Assembly (NCBI GenBank): GCA_002104905.1
Contig: MCFE01000437.1
Span: forward strand, 1-64,000
Direction of reading: 5' to 3'
Source of the DNA: Basidiobolus meristosporus CBS 931.73
Lineage: Eukaryota > Fungi > Basidiobolomycota
Length of the DNA: 64,000 nt
Of this stretch, positions 880-38,365 are shown piece by piece (positions within the stretch are counted from its first letter, which is position 1; the number at the start of each line of letters is the position of its first letter). The notes below the pieces were generated by a model, which saw nothing but the letters and a program-made list of their open reading frames with translations, was not told the origin of the DNA and did not search any database. The position numbers and the translations under genes were made by a program.

Positions 880-3790
880 ATTGGGATCAGCCACCAAGAT
901 CCTGCAATGAGGAAGTCATAACGCTGACAGCTTCAAGACACTTACCCTCTTTACAACCTGATTTTATTGATAAATAAACTTGACAATGTTTTGGCAGTCC
1001 TTTGATAGGATTTGATTGGTATCCTAATGGTATTATTGTGGCCTACACTTATTCAACTGGAACCAACCAGCCAGTAAATGCAACTGCCAGATATGAGAAG
1101 GAGCTTAAAGGTATTTCAATGGCTCTTATGTGGACATCTGTTGGCATTGTAACAGCAGTTCCCCAGTGAGAAATAGATTGGTCCAGCAAGAGGTTACAAT
1201 CTGTCCTGCAATCAGACTGTCACAATGTCAGCAGCTAGGAATTATTGACCTTCTTCACAATGTTATGACAGGATTGTGATGGTGTTTTGCAGACTCTAAT
1301 GCTATATAGGTAAGTAAACTTGATGGTGTTTGGGTGGTTCTCTAGTGGGATTTTGATGACATTCCAAGAGTCTTATTGCAGCCTACACCTATAAGAGCAT
1401 ACCCTACCTGCCAGTACTTGCAAATGCCATATATAAAAAAAAACTCAATGGTGGTTCAATGGACTTGATGTAGACATCTGTAGGTAATATAACAGCAATG
1501 TGTTAGCCTACAGCTAGTACTATGTATTGTTACTGTCATGATCACATGACAACCATGAACACCAATGCCAAGTTTCAGCTTCCTAGCTCAATTTCTAAAA
1601 GATTCCTTCTGGAACCTTCTACCACCTTCCAGAAAGTTCCTGACCATTCCAAACCATTGTTATACAATGGATCATTCCATGGAAGCTTCCCATTGTATTT
1701 TTCATAGTCCAGTATCATATATAGAAATACCAGGTCACATGATTTAGTCACATGATCAGGTGACCCAATTCATTTCCCCATCCTGTCTCAGTGCCTTGCC
1801 TTCTATATTATTATCCCCAGCACATTGCTGCACCTCACCCCACAACCCCATTAGTATTAGCCAATATCTCTTGGCATCAGTATAACCAAAAAGTATATAT
1901 AGTCCTATCCCCCCTTAAGTACTCCTGAGTCTGATAAACACAGGTCTTGAATAAACAGCCTTGCCTTGAATCCTGCCTTGCCTTGATGGTCCACACCTAA
2001 GTCCTTTCCTGCCATGCCTAGCTTTTCCTCCTGCCTTGTGTCTATTCATAACAGTTACTGTACCAATTTACCAAATGGTAATTGATTTTGCTACCTCCCC
2101 TTTGCTTTAAAAATCTGATTTTCCACCTAAATACTCACCAAACTTAGTCACTTGGATCACAGCTTACAAATATTTGAGAATACCGGCCTAGTTCCTTGTT
2201 AGGAATTTACAAGAATATTTTAACAGATTATCAGGTACCCATAATAAGAAAATTCTCAAAGCTGTCCAAACAGCCCCAAACATTAATTGCATATTCTGAA
2301 ACCATCCTAAGCCTACTCTATGTGCTTGTTATGCCAAGATCATGTAAAAGTAAAAGTATCACTGTTACATTCAATAGATCATTCAGTGAGAACCACATAA
2401 TCAGCTCATCCCCAAAATCACCTCTGATACCTCCAAGACTCTTACCACATCCTTGCAACATTCATGTATTTCATTGTAAGGTCACCCAAATTAGCTTGCT
2501 TACCAACTACTACTGTTTGTATTCCATATACAGTTTGAATGAAGAGACTATGGCCACCTGCTTACCAACCACTACACATGTGCACACCTGCTGCAGTTGG
2601 CATACTTCTAGCACCTAAACCCAAAAGGTCACCACATATTTTATATTGCTGGTAACATATGTATCTTGCAAACATATGCCTGCTTGCCATCAATGTTGCC
2701 ATGCATCCCTCTTGAAAATCTGCATAATACTTTTTGGTACTTGAGAATGTATTCTTTCTCTCTGTTGATCCTGGTCCCCCTCATAGATATGCTTTGGTTC
2801 TTGCTTGAAAGAGTTATATATTGAATGGTGTAGAAATTGATTTGTACCAAGGGGCAACCCAGCATACTTTAGTAAAGTTGTCCTAGTCTGAATTGGTTGC
2901 TTGTTGCATCCAACCAAACTTTGCATTACTTAACTGATCACCCATGCATTGAGGCTGCTTAGCTCTTAGTGCTAATGGCATAGACATCCCCATGTGCACA
3001 TCTGTCCTCAGTATTTTCCAACTCCTCTTGGCTGTCCTTCATGAGCCAACCCATCACATTCATGACAGACCTGAAGGTAATATTCTTGATGCAATTGTAA
3101 TATGGTAGTACTTGCTACTTGACTTGTCTTCCCATCACTCTGCATATCTGCTCCATAGGAAACTTCCAAAAGATGAAGCAAGCCACAATATTCTCCAAAC
3201 ACCAAGCAACATGAAGTACAGGATAGATGCAGTGGTGGCAGAGATATGCATGTTCAGCTTTACACATATGCTACAGCCTGCAATATCTGCACATGACTCC
3301 CATTACTTCCAATGTACTTGGGGTCAAAATTGCCTCAGAAGGCCATTTGAAAAATACATATCTAGTCCATCCAGTCCTTGCACTTATTTTATTGCACATG
3401 CATATAAATACTGGTTTAAGCTTATGAGAGATTCCTTGTGTAGCATATGCTCTGTTATATTTTGCCAGTTCTGTCACATATTTCTGGTATCTCCAAGGGC
3501 TCATTTAGCTTTGAATGACCCATACACAACCTGATCATTATCATAGTGATACTATTGAAGAGCAAATGCATTGCTCCCAGTGGAAATCTTTAGCTCCAGC
3601 AGATTCTCTCTATATTTGGTATCTTTGGTTGTTGATTAATTTCATATTCTGGCCAACAGCATATAGCCTGAACATTCCCTTGTGGGAAGATTATATGAAT
3701 AGTAGTGGTGTCTGGATAATAATAATGTGTGTGACTGTTGAAGTATATTCCCTCAACCTCTTGTGCACAGGAAAAGCAGCTTGACACTCA
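880..3790 (-). mobile_element. Fragmented CMC/EnSpm (Tnp2-like) transposase remnants, interrupted by a solo LTR and other inserts
   Basis: Reverse complement aligns by eye to the transposase 3' half and trailer of the copy at 5760-8880. For example, ORF 3008-3205 reads GEYCGLLHLLEVSYGADM and ORF 3271-3504 matches the KYVTELAKY..QGISHKLK region. Confidence 0.7.
1534..2053. repeat. Solo LTR (520 bp), family not otherwise represented by an internal region in this window
   Basis: Starts TGTCATGA and ends TCATAACA (TG...CA, short terminal inverted repeat). Flanked by a 5-bp direct repeat GTTAC (1529-1533, 2054-2058). Removing it restores the colinear CMC trailer sequence (compare 57170-57210). 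Confidence 0.85.
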
Positions 3791-5210: not shown

Positions 5211-5755
5211 CAAATCCCTGCATATATATACATCATCTGTAACACCAGTGCAGCCATTTGGTCTGTTTTGCACCAACTTGATTGGACATGTGCAAGCTAT
5301 GACACCTTGTCCAACCACTAGGATCAGGAATTTACTTGCTGAATGGGCAAAATGGGATATTTGATGGCAAATCAGGTAGCTTGTGTATTGGTCAAAGAGT
5401 TAATTGAGGGCTAACAGCTTCAGAATACTTTTGGACCAATTAACCAATAGGATACCATCCAATTAGAGTGATGGCAGCCTAAATAGTAAGTATGAGTGTA
5501 GTGTATAGCGTGATATGCATTTATTTCCATTTAAGTTAAAGAAATATATCCAAATACTAGATTTTACCTACCATAATAGCGGTATCCAATTGTGCGTGTG
5601 ATGCAATCATTATGAGTTGGCACAATCATCTGTGCCAACCTCATTGTGCCAGATTGTGGCATAGTGTGCAATACTGTCTTACATAGTGCAAAATTGTCCA
5701 AGAGTGATCCTGCCAACTGGTAGCTAAATATTGCATCCAATTGATCTTATTATCT
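5211..5755. mobile_element. Orphan fragment of the right-hand subterminal region of the PHIS-type element
   Basis: Colinear with 15790-16320 and 28700-29230 (ccctgcatatatata...ctaggatcagg.atttacttgc...gatggcaaatcaggtagc...gtgccaacctcattgtg). It lacks the terminal inverted repeat. Confidence 0.8.
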
Positions 5756-12170: not shown

Positions 12171-13435
12171 AAAAACCAAAGGGGAAATACTGTTACATAT
12201 ACATGTGTATGTGGTGCCACAACTTTATTTATAATGCTTACTATGGTAGGTCATCATTGAATCTTAGATTCATGTAGGTGTAATGTCTCAAATACATCAC
12301 AGTCTCAAATTCACATGAGTATTGGCCAGAAAGCAATATATTAACGTTATGCTATTGCATGTCCAACTGTTTGCTCCATGGAAAAGACTACTCTGATTCA
12401 ATGCCCTAACAGAAGAGAAAAAAGACCATGTGGCTATTGTAGCAAGCCTCTCAGTCATGACGCATGCAGACAGCATAGGAAGTAATACAAGGATCATGGC
12501 CAGTGTTTTGCCACACAGGTCATATTTGACCATTCAATGGTCACTACTGTACCAACATTATCTTACCAGCCAGTTGAAGAGGTTCACCAGTGGATTGTGA
12601 GCCTATCTCCCCTAGCAACAGTACCACACATGAGCCCAGTCAAATCCCAATATGTAATGATACAGCACCTGTTGAATCAAGTGCCAAGGATACTTTATGG
12701 AGCCAAGTGAGCCCAGTAATCCATCTATTGGAGAATGATGTAATGCTGTGCTAGAGATGTGGCACATTTTTACTAATATCAGTAATTGGGGCTTTGAGGA
12801 TATATTACTGCTTCTTGCCAAAATCATTCCAGGATGCAACTTACCATGTACATGGTACAAGAGGACAACCATCCTGTGGCTGGCAACATATGATCAAGAG
12901 ACTGTCCTGATTCCACATGTGCTAACAGTTGCATGGCATTCACATCCAAAATGCTACCATTGCAATGTGTCCAAATTGTCAGGAATCCACCACCATTGAG
13001 GGAAAACATTGTTCACACTCCAGATACACTCTGGTAATACCCTGTCTGAGTAAGCTAAGGCAGTCCGGCAAATATTGCAAAGCTATGCAGTACTGCACTC
13101 AGTATCAATCAGGTGCAACCATATCTAATATATTTGATAAAAAAATTTGACAAAAGCGGAAATGCTCAGAAAAGAGGGTATCTGTTGGAGCAAAAGCTTT
13201 CAACAATATCTCTATACTGATGACCAAGTTGTGTGAGGAGCATTTGAAGCTAAATGAGCCCTTTGAGATATTAGACTTGTTCCATTGTATAGTGCCACAT
13301 AGTACCAGCCTGTTTATGGTGCTGGATCAATCTGGCACTATAATTTCTACCATGATGCCAGTGGTATGATACAGCTACTGGTAATTTTACTCAATCTTAC
13401 TTATGTTGCTCAGAATAGTGCTTTCCTTGCTTTAT

Positions 13436-14320
13436 TTACTCTTGAAAATGCTCCAGACACATTTCTCTCAGTGGATGTCTTCTTGTATGAACATACTGTG
13501 CATTGATAAGTATCTTAACTATTTTACCTATTCTGCTGTTTTCTCCTATATATGACTTTCCTCTGTGTTTACCTGCCAATATGCTGAATCTCTTCAGATA
13601 TCCAAATGTGTGCTCTACCCTCACTCTGAAATGATTAAATATCTCATTGTAGAGCTTCTGCTTCCTGCTAAGCACACCATTCCTTGGCTTCCTATAAGCT
13701 GTAATATATCCTAATCTGTGAAAATCCTCTCCTATATAGGCTAAGTCTGCCATACATTTCTCCCCTCTACTGAATTCAGGATGATTCTCTACCCAGAGTG
13801 CTTTGTCATGCCTACTTCCAGTAAATGGCCCACTAAACCAGATGATGTTGCCCTCAATGTCAGACAGTGCTGGAAACTTCACACAGTATGCCTTGTACTT
13901 GCTAGAATAAAAGTGCCTCCACCCTGTAGAAGGTCTATTAATCCTCACTGGGAAGGTATCCAAAATACTCCTGATATGGAACCTGTTGCTGAACACTCTG
14001 GGATATGAAAGTCTATTGGAGCTTCTGAACCTGGTATTCCAAGCTTGCTCTAAGTCATTCATACCCTCTGCAAGGTGGTTCTCCATTGCTGTCAGCTGGG
14101 AATGAAAGCTTCTAGGACTTTTGTTGCCATGGATGGTGGGATGAAACCTTGTAGGGCAATAGTTCTTGTAATAGCAGAGAAGCTTAACATGGGATCTCCT
14201 TGAGTAGATTGGGGTTGATGGTCCACAGTACTTGGAATAGATCTCCTCTAGTGTGTCAAAAGGAAATCCAGTGGTAGTGATGGGATTGATGAGAAAAGAC
14301 CATTCAGATGAGTAAGTCAT
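13436..14320 (-). CDS. DDE_Tnp_4 (Harbinger/ISL2-type) transposase, 294 aa, uninterrupted
   Basis: Motifs ILDTFPV (D1), FYSSKYKAYCVKF, GPFTGSRHD, MADLAYIG (D2) and RKPRNGVLSRKQKLYN..RVRVEHTFGYLKRF (E) match the DDE_Tnp_4 pattern. Homologues lie at 26267-27175 and 33264-38780. Confidence 0.88.
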   Translation of the reverse strand: MTYSSEWSFLINPITTTGFPFDTLEEIYSKYCGPSTPIYSRRSHVKLLCYYKNYCPTRFHPTIHGNKSPRSFHSQLTAMENHLAEGMNDLEQAWNTRFRSSNRLSYPRVFSNRFHIRSILDTFPVRINRPSTGWRHFYSSKYKAYCVKFPALSDIEGNIIWFSGPFTGSRHDKALWVENHPEFSRGEKCMADLAYIGEDFHRLGYITAYRKPRNGVLSRKQKLYNEIFNHFRVRVEHTFGYLKRFSILAGKHRGKSYIGENSRIGKIVKILINAQYVHTRRHPLREMCLEHFQE

Positions 14321-14476
14321 ATTAAAATTGATGGATGATTGTATGGAGGCGGTTTGAATTGATTTGGCGCAATATGCATTATTTATCTGATTTTTAATAC
14401 ATTATGGTTAAATCTCCATCAATTGCCATTTATCCCATCCCCCAGCTCACAAGCATGGTCCAGACTGGAAAAGCCA

Positions 14477-15631
14477 ATGTCGGATCCGTTCAAGTTCTTG
14501 CCAAATGATTTTAGTATGGCCCAAGTGTCTATGATGAGCCTTCATACAGATATTTGGGCACTACTGATTAATCTATCAGAACTAGATACCTCAGAGAGTC
14601 AACAAAGATGGAAGAATTTGAGTAGAAAGCTGTGGCATGAGTTCTACATCAAGATGCCAGCCAATGTATGTAAGAAGATATATAATAAGACAAGTATTGA
14701 AATCAAGAATGAGCTGAGAGTGAGGGGATTTGACAAAGAAGCCACGCAGGAACAATTTTGCGCGCAATTTGCACAGTACAGGCTGGATGTGTCTGTTTGT
14801 GCCTCAACTTTGGGAACCAAAGAGATTTTGAATGAGTTTTTGCCTCAAATGACTAATGTACTATGTGATATATTAGTAGAGCTAAGTGGCTTCTGAGAGC
14901 AATATACACAGGACTCATCCAGGCAACAGCTCCAAAGTATCAGACAGAGGGTAAGTGAATACCTTGAGGAATCATATGGTGAGCTTCAGGAGGAAGAATA
15001 CAGACCGCAAGCAACAATGTCCAGATTGCACCAGCATGCCTTGCTGGATTCCCTACCATCTCTTGCAACCACAGCGTGCCGGCACATGTCAGTCCAGACC
15101 ATGCCAACACCCTTTACCAGAACGCCCCGCATCAAGTCAATGAGCATTGAGTCAACTCACACGCTTCAGAGCAAAACTACAAGAACTCACCAAACAGCTC
15201 ATTTAGACACAAGTCCATTGGAGTGGACCAAGCTGCATTAACATGCGGCATCACATTGAACTCAGCCAAGGGCCATCTCAACACATCAAGGCATGCCTGC
15301 ATGTGCCGTTTTGCCGGACCTTCAGCAAGTTACTGCTGGTGAACTGACTGATGATGACCTACATGAAGTGCCTCAACCACCGGAGCCCTTGGCAAGTAAA
15401 AGAACATGTCAGCATGTGGCACTACAGGCCGGTTCAGTTGGTTCAGTTGGAGCAATTCAGCGTGGCCAAGCTGCAGCATCACACTCATCAACTAGGAGGC
15501 AAAATACTGACTACAAATACACAAGTTGCCAAGATGATAGTCAGCCAGGAAGTAATATAGGTGTGCAGAGTGAGTCACTACCAAATGCTTCAGTAGTAAT
15601 CCCGGTGAGAAAAAAACCCAGGAGAAGATGA
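14477..15631 (+). pseudogene. PHIS ORF2, reconstructed about 384 aa, possible Myb/SANT-like DNA-binding accessory protein
   Basis: Track ORFs 14423, 15017 and 15293 share one frame. The three stops (14894 TGA, 15239 TAA, 15257 TGA) align to CAA codons in copy 2, so they are C-to-T lesions. The C-terminus ends RKKPRRR (NLS-like). Confidence 0.75.
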
Positions 15632-18600
15632 TGCAATTGCTTTGAATTTCTCCAATTTGTAATGATCCCAACAACCCATTTTTTTTGCAATCCAAATCAA
15701 GCCATTGCAAATCAGTGATCATCAAATTTTTGATATAAGTAATTTCAAGGTTGTCTCACATTTTAGACAGGACCCCTATAAATAAACACCCTGCATATAT
15801 ATACGTCATCTGCAATACCAGTGCAGCTATTGGATCTGTTTTGCACCTACACAATTGCTTGCGTGCTAGCTATGACATCTTGTCCAATCACTAGGATCAG
15901 GGATTTACTTGCTCAATGGGCAAATGGGATATTTGATGGCAAATCAGGTAGCTTTTTTAGTAGTCAATGAGCCAATTGGGGGCTGCCAGCTTCAGGATAC
16001 TTTTGGACCAATTAACCACTGAGATACCATCCAATTGGAGTGAGGGTAACCAAAATGGTAAGTATCAGTGTAGTTTATAGTGTGATACCCATTTATTTTC
16101 ATTTACATTAAAGAAACATATCCAAATACCGGATTTTACCTGCCATAATAGCGGTATCCAATCGCGCATGTGATGCAATTATTACAAGTTGGCAAAATCA
16201 TCCGTGCCAACCTCATTGTGTCAGATTGTGCCATAGTGTGTGAGATTGTCCCGCATAGTGCAAAATTGTCCAAGAATAATCCTGCCTTCTGGTAGCTATA
16301 ATATTGCGCCCAATTGTTCTTTACAACCGTGGATTGCGCCGCATGCCCTGGCACGGTACAATGGAACAAGTCTATTGGAGAAACTTGAAAGAATTGGCAA
16401 CATATTACAGAGTATCTGCTACCCTAAGTATGTTCCACAGGCTCCAATCAATTTTCATACTCATATGCAACAATACAAATGCAACAACTGAATGAAGTGG
16501 ATATGTACTTGTTCAAGTGGCATTCTGAAGCCATTCCTATCAGGAGTGCAGTGGAAGCATAGGGAGTCATATGTTGACATTGTAGGAATATCTATCAGGA
16601 AGTGGATCTTCAATGCCAACTTGATGCATCTACAGCTGTTGTGTAAGGAGTTTGCAACATCATTTGAGTAGCTACACTACAAACATAAAGCTGAACATGT
16701 AGATCTCTGACACTACTGTATCTATTCTCTACTGAATTTTACACATTGTGTGCAGAACATTGGTCCTTGATTGACCTTTTGGGAGTTTTCTATGGAGTGG
16801 ATGTGTGGGGAGAGAGGATGACAAGTCAGGTTGCAGGTACTACCATATCCCAATCTCATTAAGAATATTACCTTCACGTCTGTGATGGATGTGATGAGTT
16901 GGCACATGGAGGACAGCCAAGGAGACTTGGAAATTTCTCAGGATAGATGTGCAAATGGAGATACCTATGCCTATGGCATTAAGAAGCTAAGTGGCCCCAA
17001 TGCATAGGTAATCAGTTAAATAATGCAAAGTTGGGTTGGGTGCAACAGGCAACTAATTATTATTACAAAAACTCTACAAAGATGTGCAGAGTTTCTCATG
17101 GTCACAAGCCAACTTCTACACCATTCAATACAGAATCCACACAAACAAGAGCCAGGGCGCACCTATAAGGGGGACTAGAATTCAGCAGGGTGTAGGAATA
17201 TACTGGCTAAATACCAAGAAGTTCTTTGCAGATATTCAGGAGGTATTCATGGCAGAAGTGGCAACAACCAACAATATGTTTGCAAGATGTATATGTTACC
17301 AGCAGTACAAGGTATATGGCAACTTGGCAAGAATCACATTAAAAAGCCATAAAGTTGAGGTGACCGAAGTATGTCAACTGCAGCAGGTGTGTGTGTTTGT
17401 TGAGCTTAGTAAGCAGGAGGCCATAGCTTTGTTTGATTCAAACTACATGTGGAATACCCAAGGTAGTAGTGGGTAAGTAAATAAAGAGGGGTATTCTACA
17501 GTGGAATATTTGAATTACACAAGGGAAGGTAGAAAAAGGAAATACAATTTGGTAAAATTGTATAGTAGCATTATACAGAACTAGCTGTAGGCCACCATAT
17601 TGCTGTTATAATGCCATCTCAATCTTACTGTGAGGCCACTGTAACACCATCAAGATTTTTGTCATATAAGGCAATAGGATGTCCTCACATGTTGGATCCA
17701 TTTAAAATAGTTGTAGAGCGCTGGTCAGGATCAGATCCTCCTGCAGGACCCAGTTACTTTTCATAGGGTACATTACCCAGTCAGACCCTATGTTTGTGTA
17801 TATTGATTGGGTATTGCTCCTTTTGCACACTTCCCACTTCCTAACTGACATAATGTTCCAACTCTGATAAATGCAAATTGGTTTATTTTCACTTAATCTT
17901 CAGTTCTATTTGGTGGCCAGTTGTATTAACCTACACAAGTCACTGCACCCATCATTAGCACTGAGCACATTCACACACTCATCAATTAATGTGATTAAAA
18001 TCCACCAAAGTCAAGTTTTCTTCTATTACCTTTACAGTTCTTCTGCTACTAGCAGGCATGAGGAGTGGTATGTAGAATAGTCAATTTGCTACATTTTATG
18101 CACCAGAGCTAGCCAATTTAACACTAGCAGATATGAACTCATTTGACTTTCAGCTTGATTTGGCTGGTATTTAAACAAGCCTTGCTGGGGCACAGCTGTT
18201 GAGTTTACCTATATATTTGTTGAAATAATTGATGGAAGTAGAGGGCAGCTGATTAGTAAGCTCTATGAAGTGTTTGCTGGTTTAGTCTTCTGCAGAACAA
18301 TATGTACCTTTTGCTGCCAGATATGTAGTATCAGAAATACTCTTACCAAACTCAGTTCAGTTTGAAAATTGGAATTTGGTGTGTATTAGGCTTGTACAAC
18401 TGGATAAAGCTACCAAAGGCTACAGGGGCCATATAGTACCATCATACGCTGGGGATGCACAAAAAACTACACTCATAGCATGCTGAGATTAGTTATATGT
18501 TTGCTAGATATACATGGATGAATGATACTGTTTAGTCCACCAATACTACTAGTGCTTTGCATCAGTCCTGCCTAAGACATTTTGTCTGGATAGAGCACCA

Positions 18601-22370: not shown

Positions 22371-24399
22371 CAAAATTCCATTCCTACTCCTGGCTCCAAC
22401 TATGTGCAATATTGGCCAAGGATGTGATAGCAAACATCACTGCAAGGAATCCTAAAGTGCTGGAGGTCTACTCCTTACTTGTATATAGTAGGTAAAAGTA
22501 CACTACCCTATGTGTGCTTGGTGACTGATGATTGCAAAAACCTCTGGTCCTAATTTGTAGGTGTTTCTAGTACTAGCACTATATTAAGTGATGCTGCTTC
22601 TCTATTTTGCTAGGTGCTTCATGTGTTTATAAAAGCCTTTATAACTTTTGTTACTACCCTCAATGCTCCATAATAGCAGGACTAAGGTGTATTGCTCATG
22701 TTAAGCTCAATGATCAAATACTTATCAACAATAGGAAAGTACTGCTGATAAAAGGGGTGGTTAATTGATCTGGGACTGACTTCTTGTTATACTTAAAAGG
22801 ATTGCCAAGTCATTATTAGTGACAGGGTTTTAGAGGTTTCCCTTGTATACTGGTCTTGGTGATGGCACAATAAGTTAGAGATACTGTAAGAAGGTTCTGG
22901 AAGGTTGAGGTTGCTTAGCACATCCAACCAATCAAGGATCAGTGGGTAAAAATATTAGTATCAAAGAGTTACCATATATAAAATGGAAATGGTAAGGATA
23001 GTAACACTGACATAGGTCATTTCATGGGAATTGTTGCTGTTACTTAAGCACCTTTGCTGTAAGGAATTACCTCAAGTAGTTCTATTATGCTAATCAAAGT
23101 TGATCCACCTTGTAGTGTATCTGCAGAGGGCCACCAGTAAGTTTTTGGAGCAGTTTATTGGTGCTCAAGGATACAACACAAAGAACACCGGCCTTAGTAT
23201 GGGGGACAGAGTCACAGATGTATATGCCAAGGGGAAAAAACCAAAAACACTGAAGTTTCCCAAAGCCATTTAGTACAATGATGAAGAATGCATTGATGTT
23301 CCAGCAACCACTAGAAGTCTGGCATGCTTGCATCTTACAGCTAGTGTACCATGGACCTATTGGGAACCAAACTCTATTAAGAAATATTTAGCCATGCAGG
23401 TGGATGCAGTCCTGATCAGCTCTCAGAACCCTGACATTAGGCTACATAATGCCAGCAGCTTGGAATTCTTGACTCTCTTTATGATCTTATGATGGGATTG
23501 TATCAGTGTTTATTGTTCTACATCCAGATAGATTATCAAACTTGAGAGCTTTTTGACAGTTGGGTGAAAGACTTGCATGGCATTCTAGTGGTCACATTAT
23601 GGTCTACCCTTATTTAGGCAAGCCCAACTAGCAAATAGACTTGTCCCATTGCAGCATGCCATGGCATGTACTGCAATCCACAGATGCAAAGAACTTCTGG
23701 GTGCAGTGTTGTAGCTACCAGTAGGCAGGATTACTCTTGAATGATTTTGCACTATGTGGGTCAGTCTTGCACACTATGGCTTAGTCTTATACCATGAGGT
23801 TGGCATGGATGATTGCGCCAACTTGTAATGCTTGCATCACATACATGATCAGATACCATTAAACTGATAGGTAAAATCCAGTATTAGGATTTGTTTCTTT
23901 AATTTAGTTGGAAATAAATCCATATCCCACTATAAGCCACACTGATACTTACCATTTTGGTTACCATCACTCCAAATGTATGGAATATCAATGTCTGACT
24001 GGTCTGAAAGTATCCTGAAGCTGTTAACCCTCAATTGACTCATTGAACAATGCAAAAGCTACCTGATTTGCCATAGGATATCCCATATTACCCATTGAGC
24101 CACTAAATCTCTGATCTTATTGATTAGACAAGGTGTCATAAAAAGCATGCAACCAATCATGTAGGTGCAAATTAGATCAAATAGCTGCACTGGTGTTACA
24201 GATGATGTATTTATATGCAGGGTGTTTAGTATAGGGTGCTCTGTCTAAAATGTGAAAAAAAATTCACTTTACTTATAGCAAATGTATAGTGATCATTGAT
24301 TTGCAATGGCTTAATTTGATTTGCAAAAAAAATGTGTTATTTGGATCACAACAAATGGTTGCAGTTCAATGAAATTGTATCATCTTCTGCTAGGTTCTT

Positions 24400-25091
24400 T
24401 CTCCTAGGGATTACCACTGAAGCATTTGGTAGCAGTACCTTTTATACGCCCAAATACTGCCTTGTTGACTATCATCTGGATTAATTGTGTACTTGTAGTC
24501 ATTATTTTGCCACCTAGTTTGTGAGTGCAATGCTGAAGCTTGGCCATGCTGTATTGCTCCTGATGATATAATGGCACTGATCTTATTAGCCATGGGCTGA
24601 CACTTTTTTTACTTGTCAAAGTCTCCAGTGGTGAAGGCACTTCATGTGGGTCATTACCTGTCAGTTCACCAGATGTAACTAGCTGTTAGTCAGGAGCAAC
24701 AGCATGCGCAGGTGCAACTTAATGCATTGGCATAGCCATTGGCTGAGTTTGATGTGATGTTACATGTTGATGCAACTTGGCCCTCTCCAATGGACTTGTG
24801 TCTGCATGAGCAGTTTGGTGAGTTCTGGTGGTTTTTCTCTCAAGTATGCATGTTAACTCAATCCAGAGCACTCTTGTGAAGGGTGTTGGCATATGTTGGA
24901 CTGACATATGCCAGTGCATCAACACAGAAGGGATGGTAAGGAGTTCAGCAAGGAATGCTGGCACTGTCTAGATGCAGCTGCTCATGGTATGTATTCTTCT
25001 TATTGAAGCTCATCTTGTAATTCTTTGAGGTATTCACTCCCCCTCTGTCTGATACTTGGGAACTGTTGTCTTGACAAGTCCTTTGTGTATA
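24400..25091 (-). pseudogene. PHIS ORF2, 3' part (copy 3)
   Basis: ORF 24719-24964 (HMSVQHMPTPFTR...KTTRTHQTAH.DTSPLE) matches ORF 15017-15241. The 5' part is at 32650-32813 (HTDIWALLIN...ESQQRWKN). Confidence 0.75.
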
Positions 25092-25479
25092 TGTGGCAAT
25101 TTATCAAGTGATTTGCATGTAGGGAATTTATAAAGAAGTAGTGATAATAGTCAAACTATTGCTCATTCATAAAGTGGATCATTACTTCTACATTTGTTAA
25201 AGTAATATAGCTGTACCACCAAATAAGGAGGGTTTCTCAATGATCAGGGGCATTCTGTAACAGTTTCAGGGTTAGTACATAATGTTAGTAGAAAATATTT
25301 GTTCCATTGAATGGTGCCACATAGTGCCATCCTGTTTATAGTGCTGCATTGATCTGGCACTCTATGGCACTATCTAGCACTATAAATTCTACCAATACAA
25401 GCAGTGGGATATAGTTACTGGTGATTTTACTCAATCCTACTTAGGTTGCTCAGAGTTGTGCTTTCCTGGCTTTATTTTC

Positions 25480-27097
25480 TCTTCATAACGCGCCAGACAC
25501 ATTTCTCTCTAAGGATATCTTCTTGTATGTATGTACTGTGCATAGATATGTATCTTAACTATTAGACTTATTCAGTTGGGTGGTGCCAAATTGAGCCATG
25601 AGTGCCAAATGATGCCATAGTGGGCCAGGGAGGCCAATTGAGCCTATACTTGGTCACAGAGTCTGAAACATAGCTCTGCATCTTCATGCAAAGCAGCCCC
25701 TATGTTTCACCCATTGTACTGGAGAAAATCCATATTTTAACCTTTTTTTTTTGGATCAATGTTGTGCAGGATGTGTAAGAGCACAGAAGGACTGAAGACA
25801 TGCATCTGGTACTCAATACCTATGGCACTCTGAATCTAGCTCCTGTAGGTTGTATCATGTCACAAAAATGCATGGCACTATCTTGGCCCACTGGTACTAT
25901 CTGGCACTATATTTAAATATTAGCCCTAAAGTAAGATCTATACAAAGCACTTATAGTGCCAAATAGTACCAGTGGACCAAGATAGTGCCATGCATTTTTG
26001 TGACATGATACAGCCTACAGGAGCTAGATTCAGAGTTCCATAGGTATTGAGTACCAGATGCATGTCTTCAGTCCTTCTGAGCTCCTACACATCCTGCACA
26101 ACAATGAACCAAAAAAAAGGTCAAAAAATGGTCTTTCTCCAGCATGGTGGGTGAAACAAAGGGGCTGCTTTGGATGAAGATGCAGAGCTATGTTTCAGAC
26201 TCTGTGGCCAAGTATAGGCTTACTTGGCCTGCCTGGCACACTATGGCATCATTTGGCACTCATGGCTCAATATGGCACTATCCAATTGAACAAGTCTATT
26301 TTACCTATTCTGCTGATTTCTCCTATACATGAGTTTCCTCTGTTTTTACCTACTGATATGCTGAATCTCCTTAGATATCCAAATGTATGCTCCACCCTCA
26401 CTCTGAAATGATTAAATATCTCATTGTAGAGCTTTTGCTTCCTGCTAAGCACACCATTCCTTGGCTTCCTATAAGCTGCAATATATCCTAATCTCTGACA
26501 ATCCTCTCCTATATAAGCTAAGTCTGCCATACATTTTTCCCCTCTACTGAATTCAGGATGATTCTCTACCCAGAGTTCTTTGTCATGCCTACTTCCACCA
26601 AATGGCCCACTAAACCAGATGATGTAACCCTCAATGTCAGACAGTGCTTGAAACTTTACACAGTGTGCCTTGTACTTGCCAGAAGAAAAGTGTCTCCACC
26701 CTGTAGAAGGTCTGTTAATCCTGACTGGGAAGGTATCCAAAATACTCCTTATATGGAACCTGATGCTGAGCACTGTGGGATATGGAAGTGTATTCGAGCT
26801 TCTGAACCTAATACTCCAAGCTTGCTCTAAGTCATGCATACCCTTTGCAAGGAGGTTCTCCATTGATGTCAGCTGGGAATGAAAGCTTCTTGGACTTCTG
26901 TTACCATGGATAGTGGGATGAAACCTTGTAGGGCAATAGTTCTTGTAATAGCAGAGAGACTTGACAAGGGATCTCCTTGGGTAGATTGCAATAGATGGTC
27001 CACAGTACTTGGTATCAATCTCCTCTAGTGTGTCAAAAGGAAATCCAGTAGTAGTGATGGAATTGATGAGAAAAGACCATTCAGACAAATAAGTCAT
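25480..27097 (-). pseudogene. DDE_Tnp_4 transposase of PHIS copy 2, open to near the C-terminus and then cut by the MITE
   Basis: ORF 26267-27175 is highly similar to ORF 13436-14320 up to SRIGKI. The remaining codons continue left of the MITE at 25563. Confidence 0.85.
25564..26297. mobile_element. Foldback MITE copy 1 (734 bp) with PHIS termini
   Basis: AGACTTATTC...GAACAAGTCT, with ~347-bp inverted arms around a 40-bp loop. TSD ATT (25561-25563, 26298-26300); the empty site cttaactattttacc is present at 13514-13528. Confidence 0.92.
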
Positions 27098-27549
27098 ATC
27101 AAAATTGGTAGATGATTGGGCTGAGGTGATTTGAATTGATTTGGCGCAATCAGCTTGATTTATCCAATTATTCATGCATTATGATTAAGTCTCCATCAAC
27201 TGCCATGTATCCCATTATTATGGTGAAAAAATCATCCTCAAACAATGACTTGGTTTTTTTATTGATGCTTTGATCACAAGTCTAGAGTGAAATAGGAAAT
27301 CTGCAATTGATGTGATCTGATCAGTGTTAATGCAATCCAGGATGCATCATGCATAATATATGGAAAATTCAATAATTACATTAGATCTCATTTATATTTC
27401 ATATAAGACCAGGTTGATATCAATACACTACTGAATAAGTATCCAAATCTGTCACCATGGTCCCTATACCAAGCCTCAACTCATCTTTAGTACAACCCAG
27501 AAAAAATCCATCCCCCAGCTCTCAAGCGTAGTCCAGACCAGAAAAGTCA

Positions 27550-28523
27550 ATGTTGCATCTGTTTGAGTTCATGCTAAGTGATTTCAATATGGCCAAAGTG
27601 TCTATGATGGGCATTCATACAGATATTTGGACACTGCTCATTAATCTAGCAGAACTAGATACCTTGGAGAGTCAACAGCAATGGAAAAACCAGAGTAGAA
27701 AGCTGTGGCATGAGCTCTACATCAAGATGGCAGCAGTTATATGCAAGAAGATATAAAACAAGACAAGTATTGAAATCAAAAATGAACTGATAGTGAGGGG
27801 ATTTGATGAGGAAGCCATGCGCAAGCAATTTTGCACCCAGTTTGCTCAGTACAGGCCAAACACATCCATTTGTGCCTCAACTTTGAGAACCAAAAAGATT
27901 TTGAATGAGGTTTTGCCTCAAGTGACTAAAGTATTACTTGATATATTGGTAGAGCTAAGTGGCTTCCAAGAGCAATGTACAAAGGACTCATCCAGGAAAC
28001 AGTTCCAAAGTATCAGACAGAGGGTAAGTGAATACCTTGAGGAATCAGAAGGTGAGCTTTAAGAGGAAGAATACAGACTGCAAGCAACAGTGTCCAGATT
28101 GCACCAGCATGCCTTGCTGGAAATCCATTGGAGCAGGCCAAGTTGTGTCAACAAGCTGCATCACATCAAGCTCAGCTAAGGGCCATGCCGGCATATCAAG
28201 TCACATTTGTGTGTGCCATTACACCTGACCATCAGCAAGTTTCTTCTAGTGAACTGACCAATGATGACCCACATGAAGTGCCTCCACCACAAGTGCCTTT
28301 GGCAAGTGAGAGAACACATCAGCGCACCACATTGCAGGCCAGCTCAGTTGCATCATCCGGAGCAATTCAGCATGGCCAAGCTGCAGCATTGCACTCATCA
28401 GCTAGGAGGCAAAATACTGACTATAAATACACAAGTAGTCAAGAGGATAGTCAACAAGAAAGTAGCTTAGGTATGCAAAGTGAATCACTACCAAATGCTT
28501 CAGTAGTGATTCCAATGAGATAA
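27550..28523 (+). pseudogene. PHIS ORF2 (copy 2)
   Basis: ORFs 27550, 27793 and 28128 are colinear with the reconstructed ORF2 of copy 1, apart from an internal deletion near 28120. Confidence 0.75.
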
Positions 28524-31500
28524 AAACCTTGAAGAAGATGATGCAATTGCGTTGAATAGCTATTATTTCTAATGATCCAAACAACACATTTTTTCTTGCA
28601 ATCTGCATCAAGCCATTGCAAATCAGTTGTAACTCAAGTACTGATATAAGTAACATCAAGATTGTCTCACATTTGGGACAGGACCCCTGTAAATAAACAC
28701 CCTGTATATATATACATCATCTGTGGCAACAGTGCAGCCATTTGATCTGACTTGCACCTATACAATTGGTTGCATGCTAGCTATGACACCTTGTCCAATC
28801 ACTAGGATCATGGATTTACTTGCTTAATAGGCAAAATGGGATATTTGATGGCCAATCAGGTAGCTGGTGTATTGGCCAAAGAACCAATTGTGGGCTGACA
28901 GCTTTGGGACACTTTTGGGCCAATGAACCACTGAGATACCATTCAATTGGATTGATGGTAGCTAAAATGGTAAGTATCAGTGTAGTTTATAATGTGATAC
29001 GCATTGATCTCCAATCAAATTCAACAAACATATCCAAATACCAGGTTTTACCCACCATAACGGCAGTTTCCTATTTGGCATGTGATGTAAACATTTCAAG
29101 TTGGCGCAATTGCATGTGCCAACCTCATTTTGTCAGAATGTGCCATAGTGTGCAAGATTGTCCCACATAGTGCAAAATTGTCCTACAGCAATCCTGCCTA
29201 CTGGTAGCCACAATATTGCACCCAATTGCTCTTTCAGACCGCAGTTTGCCTGTGCACCCTGGCATGGTACAATGGAACAAGTCAAAAGTGTTAATTTGAT
29301 CTTCACTATAGCAGAAAATCATAGGATCATAGATCTCAAGAAACTGGGAAATTTAGGGCAGCAAATTAGTTATACAGGGACCAAGACTTTGTTTTGTTAA
29401 GTAAGCTTTTAGCTGCTGAGTGATACCAAATAGTCCAATATTTTGGCACTCCCCCTCAACTAAATAACTTCTAAATCCTAATTCCTCTCTGAGATTCTCA
29501 AATTGTTGTCTAGCTAGTGATTTGAACAATATATTTACCTCTATTTTGTCAGTTGGACAGTAAACTAAATCTACCAAGTTATTTTTGACAGATTCTCTCA
29601 CAAAGTGGTATTATATATCTATGTGTATAGTTCTGGCTTGACTAGCAGGATTTCTAACTAATAAACTACAACTTTGATTATCTCTGCAAATACATGTTGG
29701 TTCATCTGAATCAAGTCCTAAGTCTTTGAGTAATTTCTATGGCTATATAGACTTGTCAGTTACCTGGCAAGCAGCCATATTTTCTGCTTCTGTTGTAGAT
29801 AGGGCCAGAGCTGGTTGCTTCTAGCAATTCCAAGTAATAGCTATACCAACATAAAGCAATACATACCCAGCAATAGAGCATCTGTCAATCAGATCTCTGC
29901 CACAATCTGAATCACTATAATCATCAAATTTTTGCCTAATAGCAGCTCCTAAGTTTCCAGTACCATATATGGTACCTTGTAGATATCTGAAAATCCCCTT
30001 AACAGCTGTATGCTGATCTGATCCATAAATCTGAATGAATTGACTGACTATTCCAACTGCCACTGCAATATCTGGACATGTAGATACTATCAGTACAGCA
30101 GCATACCATCAATTGATTGATAGGGAAAGTTTTGGTCCATATTTAAGCTGTTTTCACCCCAAACTGGCTGAGACTTGCTCAATTTTCAATTATTGTCCAT
30201 TGGGGTAGCTGCAGGCTTGCAGCACTCTATTCTGAAGCAACTAAGAATGTCTCTGATATACTTTGACTGATTCAGCACAGTTTTCTGCATATGCATGTCA
30301 AAATTCACTTTAATTCCAATAAAATAGCTCAATTTTTGAAGATCTTTCATCTCCAACTTGTTGAATATATCTAATTTTGTCTGTGTCAGTGCCTCCTTGT
30401 CACTTGTAGCTATTACTAGGTTGTCTGCATAAGAAATTAGGGCAATCACACCTTCTTGAGCTGTTTCACATATATACTGTGTTCTGCAGTGCTACAAATG
30501 AGCACAATCTCCTCTTGATATGTGTCAATCTTGTTATACCATGCTCTAGGTGACTGATTAAGCCTGTACAACAATTTCCTGAGTCTACACACCTGATGGG
30601 GGTCTTTCAGATTGGTAAAACCTTCTGATTGCTCCATATATATAGTTTTCTGCAAATCTCCATTTAGAAAAGCTGCTTTAATGTCCATTTGGAGTAGATC
30701 TAGACTGTGTATAGCTGACTGGGCTATAATTGTCCTAAGGGAGTTAAGCTTGGCCAACAGAGCAAATGCTTCCTTAAAGTCTGGTCCCTGGATCTGGGAA
30801 TAGCCTTTGGCTACCAATGAGGCCTTGTACTTACAACGGTACCAATTGAGGTCATCTTAATCTTGTAGACCCATTTATATTCGATTGGCTTTTCACCATT
30901 TGGAACATCTACCCGTTCCCACAATTTTGCTTTTATTAGTGTTTGGTACTCATCTTGCATGGCTTGTTGCCATGCCGTAGTATCTAGACTTTGCGTTGTC
31001 TGTTCCAAATTCTGATGGTTGGCAAATAAGGCAAAATAAGCTTCCTCATGATCATTGGATGGCTGCTACCAGGATCAAGGGTCATTTCTTATTCTGGTAT
31101 ATATCCTAACTAGGATATTCTACTTGGAACTGGAACTGATAGAATTGATTTCTGTATCTAGCTGAATTTGTTATGTATCTTCATTAGTGTGGATTGCATC
31201 ATCAGGCAGCTGGCCAATGATTTCTGTGGTTTGAGGAGAGATTTTCCTCAAATACAATGTCCCTGCCCCTGATCAACTTCTGAATTCCGCCATCATGCAC
31301 TCTTTGCCCTATAGTAACATCCCAATACTCAAGAAGAATCACTTTTCTACTCTGTGGCTCCAGTTTGGAGCTTATTTGTCAAGGAAGTGATAAACAGCAC
31401 CACTACCAAAGATCATGAGGTGCTTGAGGTCTAATTTTTGGCCTGTATATGCCTCAAAGAGTGTAGAACCACATAGTGCTATTGTTGGGTGGCTTTTTTT

Positions 31501-33702
31501 GATGTATACCACAGTAGCTACAGATTCAGCCCAAAACCTGTAGTGTATTCCTTTAACATGCAGCATAGATATTCCAATCTATACTATTGTTCTATTTGCA
31601 CATTCAGCTACTCTATTTTGCTGTGGACTATTTGAAACAGTGGTGTGTTGAAGTATGCCAGTTGATCAGCAGTATTTTGCAGACTCCTTTGAGCAGTATT
31701 CCCTGTCAGTGTCACTCTGAAGTATCCTCAATTTACACCCAGTTTATGTTTCCATCTTGTACTTAAAGTGTTTCAATGTCTCTAAAGCCTATTTCTTTGT
31801 TTTGAGGAAGTATTCCCATGTAAATCTTGTCTTGTCATCAATAAGTATAATCAAGTATTGCTTGGCTCCACAGACCAGTGTTCTCATGGGTGCACGTATG
31901 TCTAAATTTACAATAGCCAATATGTTGGTGGTGTCAATGCCTCCTGAGCTCCTGAAACATTGCATGGCTTGTTGGCCATATGAGCCTCCCTTACAGACAA
32001 TCAATTTTATTGGAATTGAGTAATTTAGGCCTAAATAAGTTGATTTTTTAACCAATTGGCTCATTTGTGTTCCTTAAGTGTCCTAGCCTCATATGCCACA
32101 TCTCCCAGTTAGTTTCATCAGTTTCAGAAATGTTGGCATACTCAGGTGCAATAATATTGAATTGTAACTTATATATATTGTGGTATCTGATTCCCAAGCT
32201 AATTTTTATTCATTTTCACTCAATATTGAACAGTTCAGCTTAGTAAAAGCAAATTTCAATCCCTGAGCAGTCGCTTTACTAACAGAGATTAGGTTCTTAG
32301 CTATATCAGGTACTTAGAGTGGTCAGTCAGTCTTGCTGCTGTAGCCCCTGTGATATTTCAAAACAAAGTATGAGTGGCTCATACTATCTGGTAGGCTACA
32401 TAGCAGACAGATGATCTTATCTGCATCATCTACACCAGTATTAATACTGTCTACTTCTTCTGCAAGTGTCTCCATTCTAGTAATGAGTAGTAGCATGTCA
32501 TCATTTGGCTTCTTCCTCATGTTGAAAGACTTGTGTTTTAAATAAAGCTTGCCTGATACTGACGTTGCTCTAAAGATCTTCTCCGAGGATACCCATGCTA
32601 CTTTAGCAATATTTGAAGCAGGGATTTGTGCAATGATGGAATCTTGCATATATGCTGTAGCTTTCTACTTGGATTCTTCCATCTCTGTTGACTCTCTAAG
32701 GTATCCAGTTTTGCTATATTAATGAGTAGTGCCCAAATATCTGTATGAAAACTTTTCACAGACACAATGGCCATATTAGAATCATTTGGCAAGAGCTCAA
32801 ACAGATGTATCATTGACTTTCCGGTACAGATTGTGCTTGAGAGCTAGGGGATTGGTTTTGTCTGGGTTGTAATAAAGATAATTAGAGACTTGCTATAGGG
32901 ACCGTAGTGACAGATTTGGATACTAACACAACAGTAAATTGACATTGACCTGGCATTATATGTAATATATTTGAAAGCTAAAGTGATTGTTGAATTTTCC
33001 ATGTATTATGCATGATGAACCTTAGATTGCATTGACATGGATCAGATCACATCAATCACAGATTTCCTATATGACAATTGACTTGTGAGTAAATCATCAA
33101 TGAAATCACCAAGTCATTGCTTGAGGAGGATTTTTGCAACATCATAATGGGACACATGTCAATTGATGGAGATTGAATCATTATATATCAAATTTAGATA
33201 AGTTAAGCTGGTAATGGCAAATCAATTCATATTGCCGCCACTCATTCATACATTAATTCAGATACAACCTACTCCTCTGAATGGTCTTTTCTCATCAGGC
33301 TCAATACTGCACAGGATTTACTTTTGACACATTAGAGGAGATCAATACCAAGCATTGTGGACCATCAACCCCAATCTACTCAAGGAGATCCCTTGTTAAG
33401 CTTCTCTGCTATTACAAGAACTAATGCCCTAAAAGTTTTCATCCCACCATTCATAGCAACAGGAATCCTAGAAATCTTCATTCCCAGCTGACAGCAACAG
33501 AAAATCACCTTGCAAAGGGTATACATGACTGAGAGCAAATTTGGAATACTAGGTTCAGAGCTCTAATAGACTCCCATATCCCAGAGGGTTCAGTAGCAGA
33601 TTCCAAATAAAGAGAATTTGGGATACCTTCCAGATGACAGACCTACCAGAGGACAGGGGCACTTTTATTTTGACAAATACAAGGCACACTATGTGAAGTT
33701 TC

Positions 33703-34071
33703 TGTTGCAATTTAAGAAGTGATTTGGATATACGGAATTAATCAAGAAATAGTGATAATAGTTGAACTGTTGTTTATTCATAAAGAAGCTCAGTATTTAT
33801 ACCTTTGTAGATGTAATACAGCTGCAACACTAAGTAGGAAGGGTTTCTCAATATTCAGGAGCATTCTGTAACAGTTTCAGGGTTAGTACATAATGTTTGG
33901 TAATAGTGCTAATTTGATCCTGACTATAGGGGAATAATCATAAGATCATATATCTGAAGAAAGTGGCAAAGTTAAGGCAGTAAATGAGTCCTACAGTGAC
34001 TAAGACTAGCCTAGAATTGTTAAGTAAATTTTTAGCTGCTGAATGATACCAAATAGTCCAATATTTATACA
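33703..34071 (-). repeat. Copia 3' LTR
   Basis: Direct repeat of 37997-38365, immediately downstream of the polypurine tract. Confidence 0.95.
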
Positions 34072-37000: not shown

Positions 37001-37960
37001 GGCGGTAGCTTCCAATGCATAGTTATCTCCCAGATAAACCTTTCTTACGGGAATAGTCTTTAAGTTGCTGAACCAATCCTTTATACCACAAATATGCTGT
37101 GATGCTCCAGAGTCAATATACCATTCATTACTTTGGTTACTTGTACTCTCTTGTACAGTGACAAATAACTGTTCATCAGTAGTTATATGGTTTGCCTGCT
37201 CTAGTTTCTGTTTTTTGTCTGCCTGTTTCTTCTTGCATTCTCTTGCCCAGTGTCCTGGCTTCTTACAGTAGTTACAGCAGCCAGGTTTTCTTTGGTTTTG
37301 TTGCTTTCCCTTCTTTTCTGTATGCCTTTCTGAACTGAATAAAGCATTATCTTTAGTTTTCTTTGCTTGATCATTACGTCTGAGTTCTTCATGGAGAAGT
37401 CTTCCTTTGACATAGTCTAAAGTCAAGTTGTCTTCTCTGCTTTCAAAAGAAAGTATGAGTGGCTCATACTTGTCTGGTAGGCTGCAAAGCAGACAGAGTA
37501 TCTTTTCTTCATCATCTACACCAGCATTAATACTGTAAAGCTCTTCTGCAAGTGTCTCCATTCTGGTAATGAGTTGTAGCATGTCATCATCTGGCTTTGT
37601 TCTCATGTTGAAGAACTTTTGTTTCAAATAAAGCTTGCTTGATACTGACTTTGCTCTGAAGATCTTCTCTAAGGATTCCCATGCTGCTTTAGCAGTATTT
37701 AAGGCATGGACTTGTCCAATGAAGGAGTCTTGTACATTGATGCATATTGCATTGAAGGCCCTTCTCTCCTTCTCTTGAAACTTCTCCACATCTTCTGTTG
37801 TTCCTTTGGGCTCAACTTCCTTTCCTGTTACTATGTTCCAAAGCTTTCTTTCCTCAAGGTTGATCTGCATCTTGATTCTCCAAAGTCTGTAGCTCTTCCC
37901 ATCAAAACTCTCCTTTACAGGGAAGATGTTGGTATTGCTTTGTTTGCTGGTAGAAGTCAT
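34006..37960 (-). pseudogene. gag-pol: Copia Gag-Pol polyprotein with two in-frame stops and two 1-nt deletions
   Basis: Zinc knuckle CNYCKKPGHWAREC, protease WYIDSGAS, integrase HSDICGP/DDKTRY/SDNGGEY, RT KARLVAKGY..YVDD and RNase H YSDSDW..KHID. Lesions are TAA at 36260, a frameshift at ~35225, TAG at 34719 and a frameshift at ~34197. Confidence 0.95.
34072..34083 (-). promoter_or_regulatory. Polypurine tract GTTGAGGGGGAG
   Basis: Purine run abutting the TG of the 3' LTR; the same motif occurs in copy 2 at 29449-29460. Confidence 0.85.
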
Positions 37961-37984
37961 CTTTAAAATAGATTAAGGCAATCA

Positions 37985-37996
37985 GGGCTCATAACC
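37985..37996 (-). promoter_or_regulatory. Primer-binding site GGTTATGAGCCC (internal, half-tRNAiMet type)
   Basis: Directly follows the 5' LTR end CAACA. Its complement GGGCTCATAACC is the initiator tRNA-Met anticodon stem-loop, the known priming mode of copia-type elements. Confidence 0.85.
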
Positions 37997-38365
37997 TGTT
38001 GCAATTTAAGAAGTGATTTGGATATAAGGAACTTATCAAGAAATAGTGATAATAGTTGAACTGTTGTTTATTCATAAAGAAGCTCAGTATTTATACCTTT
38101 GTAGATGTAATACAGCTGCAACACTAAGTAGGGAGGGTTTCTCCATATTCAGGAGCATTCTGTTACAGTTTCAGGGTTAGTACATAATGTTTGGTAATAG
38201 TGCTTATTTGATCCTGACTATAGGGGAATAATCATAAGATCATATATCTGAAGAGAGTGGCAAAGTTAAGGCAGTAAATGAGTCCTACAGTGACTAAGAC
38301 TAGCCTAGAATTGTTAAGTAAATTTTTAGCTGCTGAATGATACCACATAGTCCAATATTTCAACA
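37997..38365 (-). repeat. Copia 5' LTR
   Basis: Direct repeat of 33703-34071, followed on the minus strand by the PBS and the gag ATG at 37960. Confidence 0.95.

Follow-up and report, generated by a model that had tools for sequence, protein, structure and literature searches.

The window analysed here, the whole 64,000-bp stretch of Basidiobolus meristosporus contig MCFE01000437.1, contains a compact transposon with two head-to-head genes, and an earlier note on this DNA had attributed it to a lineage outside classical Harbinger, possibly undescribed. The question raised by this locus is whether the family represents such a lineage or belongs to a group already described within the PHIS superfamily.

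Termini and target site of the element

Copy 1 is a complete DNA transposon of 3,101 bp located at positions 13273-16373. Its left terminal inverted repeat (TIR; 13273-13297, forward strand) starts with AGACTTGTTCC and pairs at 23 of 25 positions with the reverse complement of the right one (16349-16373, reverse strand, 25 bp). TAGTGCC repeats occupy subterminal positions. The same three bases, ATT, stand on both flanks as target-site duplication (TSD; 13270-13272 and 16374-16376). With one mismatch allowed at most, 11 occurrences of the 11-mer AGACTTGTTCC were counted in the window, 1.3 being expected and none of 100 shuffles matching this count, and a literature search with this 11-mer returned unrelated primers only. 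Copy 1 is interpreted as a recent insertion whose transposase looks functional.

Four fold-back MITEs of about 734 bp each, all with the ends of copy 1, were also identified in the window. The first (25564-26297, TSD ATT) lies inside the 3' end of the transposase gene of copy 2, the second (49632-50365, TSD AAT) has arms of about 350 bp, the third (57775-58507, TSD ATT) is the case fixing the TSD register, and the fourth (60880-61613, TSD ACT), whose arms of 355 nt are 92% complementary, has only the terminal 28 bp in common with copy 1. Taken together, the TSDs of the five cleanly bounded elements were ATT, ATT, AAT, ATT and ACT, that is, A-N-T in all of them, in agreement with the non-TWA target that had been proposed. 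In addition, the exact empty site of the MITE at 25564-26297 is present in copy 1 itself (13500-13560), which reads ...AACT-ATT-TTAC, and as this site carries a single ATT, both the termini and the 3-bp length of the TSD are fixed.

These data also bear on another reading, in which the family would be ISL2EU- or PHISTA-like, its termini starting with GACTTG and its target duplication being the 2 bp TA. TA does flank GACTTG...CAAGTC in every copy, but it does so by construction, and this model predicts three extra bases at the empty site of copy 1, where the ANT model fits exactly; a 2-bp TSD is excluded by this site. The shifted register is likewise excluded by the MITE at 57775. Since, furthermore, the transposase lacks a THAP domain and the second gene a YqaJ domain, an ISL2EU- or PHISTA-like origin is highly improbable. 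The transposase fold of the PHIS superfamily is shared with ISL2EU, Spy and Nuwa; however, neither the 2-bp AT TSD of ISL2EU, nor the lack of TSD of Spy, nor the CWG or TNA duplication and Myb partner of Nuwa were found here.

Copies and genomic setting

Of the three copies with common termini previously proposed, at 13273-16373, 25295-29284 and 23637-38968, the second and third were confirmed by blastn and tblastn. Copy 2 (25295-29284, forward strand) is older than copy 1; its transposase is 86% identical at amino acid level to that of copy 1 and is interrupted by a MITE, its second ORF has stops and a deletion, and its termini have decayed, the flanks being AAA and not ANT. Copy 3 (23637-38968, reverse strand) is the oldest, with 77-80% nucleotide identity to copy 1 and flanks ATC/ATT, and it is present in four pieces, separated by nested insertions among which are a Copia LTR element and copy 2. 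A fragment of a further copy (5216-5748, forward strand), corresponding to the right non-coding part, is 85% identical to positions 2517-3049 of copy 1; neither this partial copy nor the four MITEs appeared in the earlier note. No copy with both ORFs intact was found in the window.

Nesting was observed between the copies and elements of Copia and RT-RNaseH type. The CpG observed/expected ratio of the window is 0.07, and the 885-bp transposase gene of copy 1 contains no CpG at all. No tRNA genes were detected in the window. A human origin of the window is rejected, as it is dense in Copia-type elements and in elements of the type assigned below to Pangu with intact ORFs.

The transposase

The transposase gene of copy 1 (13436-14320, reverse strand) is an uninterrupted ORF of 294 codons. 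The protein can be aligned end to end with a relative also of 294 aa, so that no intron is required, and the gene is intronless as had been stated. It matches Pfam DDE_Tnp_4 at 9.7e-21, with a score of 74.5 bits where the cut-off is 24.8, a match proposed earlier as a check, and it has no accessory Pfam domain. The catalytic residues D121, D192 and E236 are all present, as expected for the intact catalytic ORF that copy 1 was said to keep, and they were invariant or nearly so when 27 relatives were aligned.

In the AlphaFold model of the transposase (pLDDT 92, pTM 0.91), D121 is part of a beta strand, D192 comes right after one and E236 belongs to a helix. The top fold matches obtained with VIA-align were piggyBac (Z 10.3), Tn5 (Z 9.5) and ISCth4 (Z 8.1), all of them DDE transposases or integrases. 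A PDB profile search found no solved sequence relative, and Foldseek with this model gave no match at E <= 0.001. The D..D..E residues on an RNase-H-like fold within a DDE_Tnp_4-type domain, together with the 25-bp TIRs and 3-bp TSDs, which fall within the 0-3 bp target duplication of the superfamily, identify the element as a member of PHIS.

A related DDE core, a similar protein size and an ANT duplication also occur in bacterial IS5 insertion sequences, which could have reached the assembly through contamination or recent horizontal transfer. The transposase gave a weak match to the NCBIfam model IS5_4 (2.8e-10), and a cyanobacterial transposase was 31% identical to it over 47% of the query. 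However, the score of that model, 40 bits, is far under the family cut-off of 140, and the best plasmid-borne matches (<=35% identity) covered the catalytic core only, none spanning 80% of the protein. The element has, moreover, a second gene, is nested among Copia/Gypsy-type eukaryotic repeats and shares the extreme CpG depletion of the window. We consequently give almost no credence to an IS5 origin.

The partner gene

The second gene, ORF2 (14477-15631, forward strand), has 384 codons and is divergent from the transposase gene, the two ATG codons being head-to-head and 157 bp apart. The PHIS-type two-gene organization described in the earlier note was thus reproduced. The 156-bp spacer between both start codons (14321-14476) is a putative bidirectional promoter. 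The predicted product is helical in its N-terminal part, of low complexity in the middle and basic in its C-terminal tail. The single frame is conserved in copies 2 and 3. In copy 1 it is broken by three in-frame stops, at 14894 (TGA), 15239 (TAA) and 15257 (TGA), and the corresponding positions are CAA in copies 2 and 3. The ORF2 of copy 1 has been inactivated by what appear to be three C-to-T nonsense changes, of which two affected presumed CGA codons, and because its partner gene is dead, copy 1 on its own is probably non-autonomous.

ORF2 was submitted to protein tools as the pieces between stops, the version with X at the stops being used in local tblastn only. Pfam searches on the three pieces and on an isolated 46-aa SAP-like segment gave nothing even at E up to 10, and Myb, SANT and MADF domains were absent from every piece at that threshold. 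When the N-terminal piece of 139 aa was used in a word search, nothing was matched among proteins of 76-243 aa, a range outside which full-length kin fall, and a feature search in the ESM Atlas returned nothing usable. The AlphaFold model of these 139 aa, from a 4-row alignment, was unusable (pLDDT 42.6). The possibility that ORF2 encodes a SAP-domain DNA-binding protein found no support, as neither a SAP match at E up to 10 nor any match in a PDB sequence search was found.

A divergent unannotated ORF also lies head-to-head with the transposase gene in the relatives L003 and L005 and in the contigs of P0011, and those of L003 and L005 are homologous (35% identity, 5e-20). BLASTP and hhalign comparisons of ORF2 with the partner ORFs of L003, L005, L006 and L008 gave no signal; a MAFFT co-alignment with the relatives' partners suggested a K-K-aromatic...G-hydrophobic motif that has no statistical support and is not claimed as shared. 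By position and general architecture, a common function of ORF2 and the ORFs of the relatives may be inferred.

The composition of the partner is also relevant to whether these elements are classical PIF/Harbinger transposons, such as Harbinger3_DR or PIF/Pong, with an atypical target. The superfamily, the DDE_Tnp_4 core, the 3-bp TSD, the transposase accompanied by an accessory protein and the abundant MITEs all agree with it. In contrast, the TSD was TWA in none of the five clean cases, being ANT instead, the partner has no Myb, SANT or MADF match and the transposase is shorter. We assign very little probability to a classical Harbinger element, and the part of the earlier proposal that put the family outside that lineage is supported.

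Classification of the family

Within PHIS, Pangu was described (Han et al., 2015; PMC4482050) as a group with a 5'-ANT-3' TSD, a length of about 3.5 kb and TIRs of 11-40 bp whose first two bases are usually AG or GG. Its transposase has no domain other than the DDE one, its ORF2 mostly lacks known motifs, and its hosts are fungi, animals and algae. In the same work the PHIS groups were delimited by TSD composition. Published Pangu transposases range from 216 to 537 aa, some of them being of 268-307 aa. This group corresponds to Harbinger2 of Repbase (Kojima, 2025; PMC12730594).

The family studied here displays the ANT TSD, a 25-bp TIR starting with AG and within the published range, a length of about 3 kb and two ORFs, one for a DDE-only transposase and the other motif-less. 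It is also found in a fungus and has MITE derivatives, as known for Pangu from Harbinger-N3_PSt, for example. We conclude, with a probability of about 0.85, that its members are DNA transposons moving by cut-and-paste and belong to the Pangu (Repbase Harbinger2) group, a placement made by structural features and not by a tree. It would be a new family of an already described group, likened to Pangu through the published description of the latter. Some differences were nevertheless observed, since with 294 aa the transposase is among the shorter ones published, no sequence-level tie to a named family was obtained, and Basidiobolus falls outside the fungal hosts listed in 2015 (ascomycetes and basidiomycetes).

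Relatives of the transposase are counted in thousands and are distant. The closest ones are unnamed proteins from metagenomes or read assemblies (Logan), the best with 59% identity and the next with <=40%; the 20 whose annotation was looked up were either 'hypothetical protein' or had none, with no named eukaryotic or Repbase-linked protein among them. In a tree of unnamed relatives the window transposase paired only with P0001. The relative L002 has a transposase 59% identical to that of copy 1, and the end of its contig carries the same terminal sequence.

Such unannotated relatives, and an ORF2 without kin in the length range searched, would be expected of an undescribed PHIS lineage, that is, a separate deep clade with transposases of about 280-300 aa and an orphan partner, resembling Pangu in its ANT target only. 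However, all the defining features of Pangu are present and groups are set by TSD composition; the published transposase lengths and the mostly motif-less ORF2s of Pangu accommodate both proteins, and the unnamed relatives reflect database content and not distance from Pangu. An undescribed lineage is for these reasons quite unlikely. The suggestion that the family was possibly undescribed is consequently not sustained, as the Pangu definition (PMC4482050) is matched, nor can the small size be taken as the sign of a separate lineage when published Pangu transposases include some of 268-307 aa. The earlier note had listed Pangu as a reference for comparison, the match itself not being recognised there.

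A further proposal, tentative and on balance doubtful, concerns the compact transposases of 276-300 aa (the copy 1 family, P0001, and clades such as P0005/P0170-P0175 and P0013/P0169), which might represent either a deep branch within Pangu or its sister group, with the partner as a new non-Myb accessory factor.

Proposed mechanism and implications

Judging from the anatomy of the element, the 294-aa RNase-H-fold DDE transposase recognises the inverted ends of about 25 bp starting with AG, cuts the element out and reinserts it at A-N-T, doubling those three bases. If it acts as in two-component Harbinger elements, the product of the divergent partner gene could aid the binding of the ends, nuclear import or both. 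The fold-back MITEs of 734 bp share these ends and the A-N-T duplications, and would presumably be moved in trans by the same enzyme. The family resides in a repeat-rich, CpG-depleted eukaryotic genome.

For the annotation of this very abundant repeat family, the analysis provides a delimited reference copy of autonomous type, a MITE and an exact target rule, and corrects its reading as an undescribed lineage and as an element with a TA target. If the proposal on the compact transposases were true, this lineage would be known so far from unannotated assemblies only, and in its partner a disordered linker would join the helical N-domain to the basic tail. Finally, the compact 294-aa transposase, with its model at pLDDT 92, may be a possible subject for a two-component transposition assay.

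Organization of copy 1 and related elements in the window

Copy 1, taken as the reference of the family, extends from 13273 to 16373 (3,101 bp) and is bounded by terminal inverted repeats (TIRs) of 25 bp with 23 of 25 positions matching; ATT lies immediately outside each end. Counted with up to one mismatch, its terminal 11-mer AGACTTGTTCC is found at 11 sites in the window versus 1.3 expected by chance, a count reached in 0 of 100 shuffles. The transposase ORF (13436-14320, minus strand) encodes 294 aa without interruption and the second ORF (ORF2) is a divergent frame of 384 codons on the plus strand, from an ATG at 14477 to a stop at 15631. The two starts are 157 bp apart. Both this distance and the intact catalytic ORF had been described in an earlier note made from the sequence only, and the ORF coordinates bear them out. 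The ORF2 of about 384 aa described there is present as a frame, but in copy 1 it is broken by three premature stops at 14894 (TGA), 15239 (TAA) and 15257 (TGA). The CpG-containing motif GCGCAAT, with 10 occurrences window-wide, appears four times in copy 1: at 14367 in the spacer between the genes, at 14762 within ORF2, and at 16303 and 16333 close to the right end. It may have a binding or regulatory role.

Further copies were located with blastn and tblastn using copy 1 as query against the window, and the three copies previously noticed were recovered. Copy 2 (25295-29284) has a transposase with 86% aa identity to that of copy 1. Copy 3 (23637-38968, minus strand) is in four pieces, separated by nested insertions, among them copy 2 and a Copia LTR element, and a fragment of a further copy is found at 5216-5748. 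In addition, the ends of copy 1 recur in four fold-back MITEs, each about 734 bp long (25564-26297, 49632-50365, 57775-58507 and 60880-61613). Their arms, of about 350 nt, are 86-92% complementary and their similarity to the autonomous element is limited to the terminal 28 bp. At 60333-60343 (minus strand) there is a lone TGACTTGTTCC terminus for which the search, within its limits, found no left counterpart; it may belong to a related element that has diverged or been truncated.

Genomic surroundings

The window is of eukaryotic, non-human origin, with nested Copia and Gypsy-type elements and a CpG observed/expected ratio of 0.07 over its whole length; no tRNAs were found in it. The transposase gene of copy 3 holds an inserted Copia-type LTR retrotransposon (about 33703-38364, minus strand). 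Its LTRs, of about 369 bp, show 97% identity across the 300 nt that were compared; one ORF, at 36260-37960, encodes gag, protease and integrase, and another, at 35141-36190, the reverse transcriptase. Adjoining copy 3, a Gypsy-type retroelement has left a remnant, a 181-aa ORF (39449-39994, minus strand) that contains the domains RT_RNaseH_2 and RT_RNaseH. Two pairs of inverted dispersed repeats (4386-5100/16778-17492 and 39841-40447/50367-50973), of 600-715 nt and 82-86% identity, adjoin copies of the two-gene family and MITEs and belong to other repeat families.

Target-site duplication

Identical 3-bp flanks were found in the five cleanly bounded elements (ATT, ATT, AAT, ATT and ACT). For the MITE inserted within the copy 2 transposase gene, copy 1 supplies the exact empty site: the filled site reads ...AACT-ATT-[AGACTT...AAGTCT]-ATT-TTAC... 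and the empty one ...AACT-ATT-TTAC.... This comparison fixes the element ends and demonstrates the 3-bp duplication. Ends at GACTTG with a 2-bp TA duplication were rejected, as they predict an empty site three bases longer than the one observed, and a one-base shift of the register was ruled out by the C preceding the left ATT of the MITE at 57775.

The transposase and its relatives

A Pfam search with the 294-aa protein gave DDE_Tnp_4 (9.7e-21) and DDE_Tnp_1 (2.9e-07) and no other domain. An alignment with 27 relatives shows little or no variation at D121, D192 and E236. The AlphaFold model obtained from this alignment is confident (pLDDT 92, pTM 0.91) and places D121 within a beta strand, D192 immediately beyond a strand and E236 on a long helix, the same triad arrangement as in Pangu and Harbinger (Han et al., PMC4482050). 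No relative of solved structure was identified by sequence, nor by Foldseek at E ≤ 0.001. The top matches of the model with VIA-align were exclusively DDE transposases and integrases, namely piggyBac (Z 10.3, 238 residues aligned), Tn5 (Z 9.5) and ISCth4 (Z 8.1). There is no CpG in the 885 bp of the gene (13436-14320), and all 27 of its Arg codons are AGA or AGG; to its right (14477-16373), there are 18 CpG in ORF2 and 13 in the right non-coding part.

An exhaustive profile search yielded 3,688 representatives at E ≤ 1e-3, 70 of them at ≤ 1e-30. The closest, P0001 (294 aa, Logan read assembly), has 59% identity, the following ones reaching at most 40%; all the relatives looked up were unnamed metagenome or Logan proteins. 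In a maximum likelihood tree of 39 unnamed relatives, the window transposase pairs only with P0001 (SH-aLRT 99). The contig of P0001 (L002) terminates in the end sequence of the window element; the ends have thus stayed conserved although the proteins have drifted apart to 59% identity. Directly inside the termini, phased TAGTGCC/GTGCCA repeats are present at 13285-13340 of the window and at 1165-1215 of L002, the latter with four tandem TAGTGCC units at a spacing of about 11 bp; they are candidate protein-binding sites. By sequence, the bacterial matches to the transposase are weak: NCBIfam IS5_4 scored 40 bits for a cut-off of 140, and plasmid-borne transposases showed at most 35% identity in alignments restricted to the core.

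The partner gene

The ORF2 frame is recognisable in copy 2 (about 70% aa identity) and copy 3 (about 60%), also with stops, and none of the copies in the window has an intact ORF2. At the two TGA stops of copy 1, copies 2 and 3 have CAA, as would be expected from decay of an ancestral CGA through its CpG on one strand or the other. The third stop reflects a simple change of CAA to TAA. No ORF2 piece matched Pfam at E up to 10; the SAP-like segment, searched in isolation, had no match either, and the SAP-like reading gained no support. A word search gave no relatives within the length range of 76-243 aa, neither ESM Atlas nor a PDB sequence search gave a usable match, and the AlphaFold model of the N-terminal 139 aa was unusable (pLDDT 42.6).

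Unannotated partner genes lie head-to-head with the transposase in two metagenomic relatives, L003 (549-1547, minus strand, 332 aa) and L005 (669-1682, minus strand, 337 aa), and contigs bearing another relative, P0011, have this two-gene layout too. The partners in L003 and L005 are homologs of each other (35% identity, 5e-20) and share a conserved N-terminal domain of about 130 aa, beyond which come an acidic linker and, at the C-terminus, a basic tail. Neither belongs to a Pfam family, and no similarity to the window ORF2 was detectable. By eye, the three translations follow the same order of helical N-terminus, low-complexity or acidic middle and basic C-terminal tail. By analogy with the Myb-like partner of Harbinger, the partner protein would act in end binding and nuclear import.

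Classification

Groups of the PIF/Harbinger-ISL2EU-Spy (PHIS) superfamily are defined by their target-site duplications (Han et al., 2015; PMC4482050). Classical Harbinger has a TWA target and a Myb partner, both absent from the window element; ISL2EU has a 2-bp AT target and THAP and YqaJ domains, and Nuwa a CWG or TNA target, none of which were found here. Spy makes no duplication, whereas the window element makes one of 3 bp. Pangu, which corresponds to Harbinger2 of Repbase (Kojima, 2025; PMC12730594), duplicates 5'-ANT-3', has TIRs of 11-40 bp with AG or GG as their usual start, and includes fungi among its hosts (PMC4482050). Its autonomous elements measure about 3.5 kb and encode a transposase with the DDE domain alone (216-537 aa in Table S3, for instance 268, 287, 303 and 307 aa) and a second ORF without known motif (PMC4482050). 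The window element agrees with Pangu/Harbinger2 in all structural criteria. The DDE_Tnp_4 assignment and the non-TWA target proposed in the earlier note stand, as does its placement outside classical Harbinger; its suggestion of a possibly undescribed lineage does not.

Huge expansions of PIF-Harbinger have been reported in the genus Basidiobolus (Muszewska et al., 2017; PMC5751038), and our literature search found no paper linking this genus with Pangu. Since its duplications fit the published definition (PMC4482050), the window element is assigned to Pangu. Placed by structural criteria, it probably represents a new family of this known group or, at most, a new sub-lineage.
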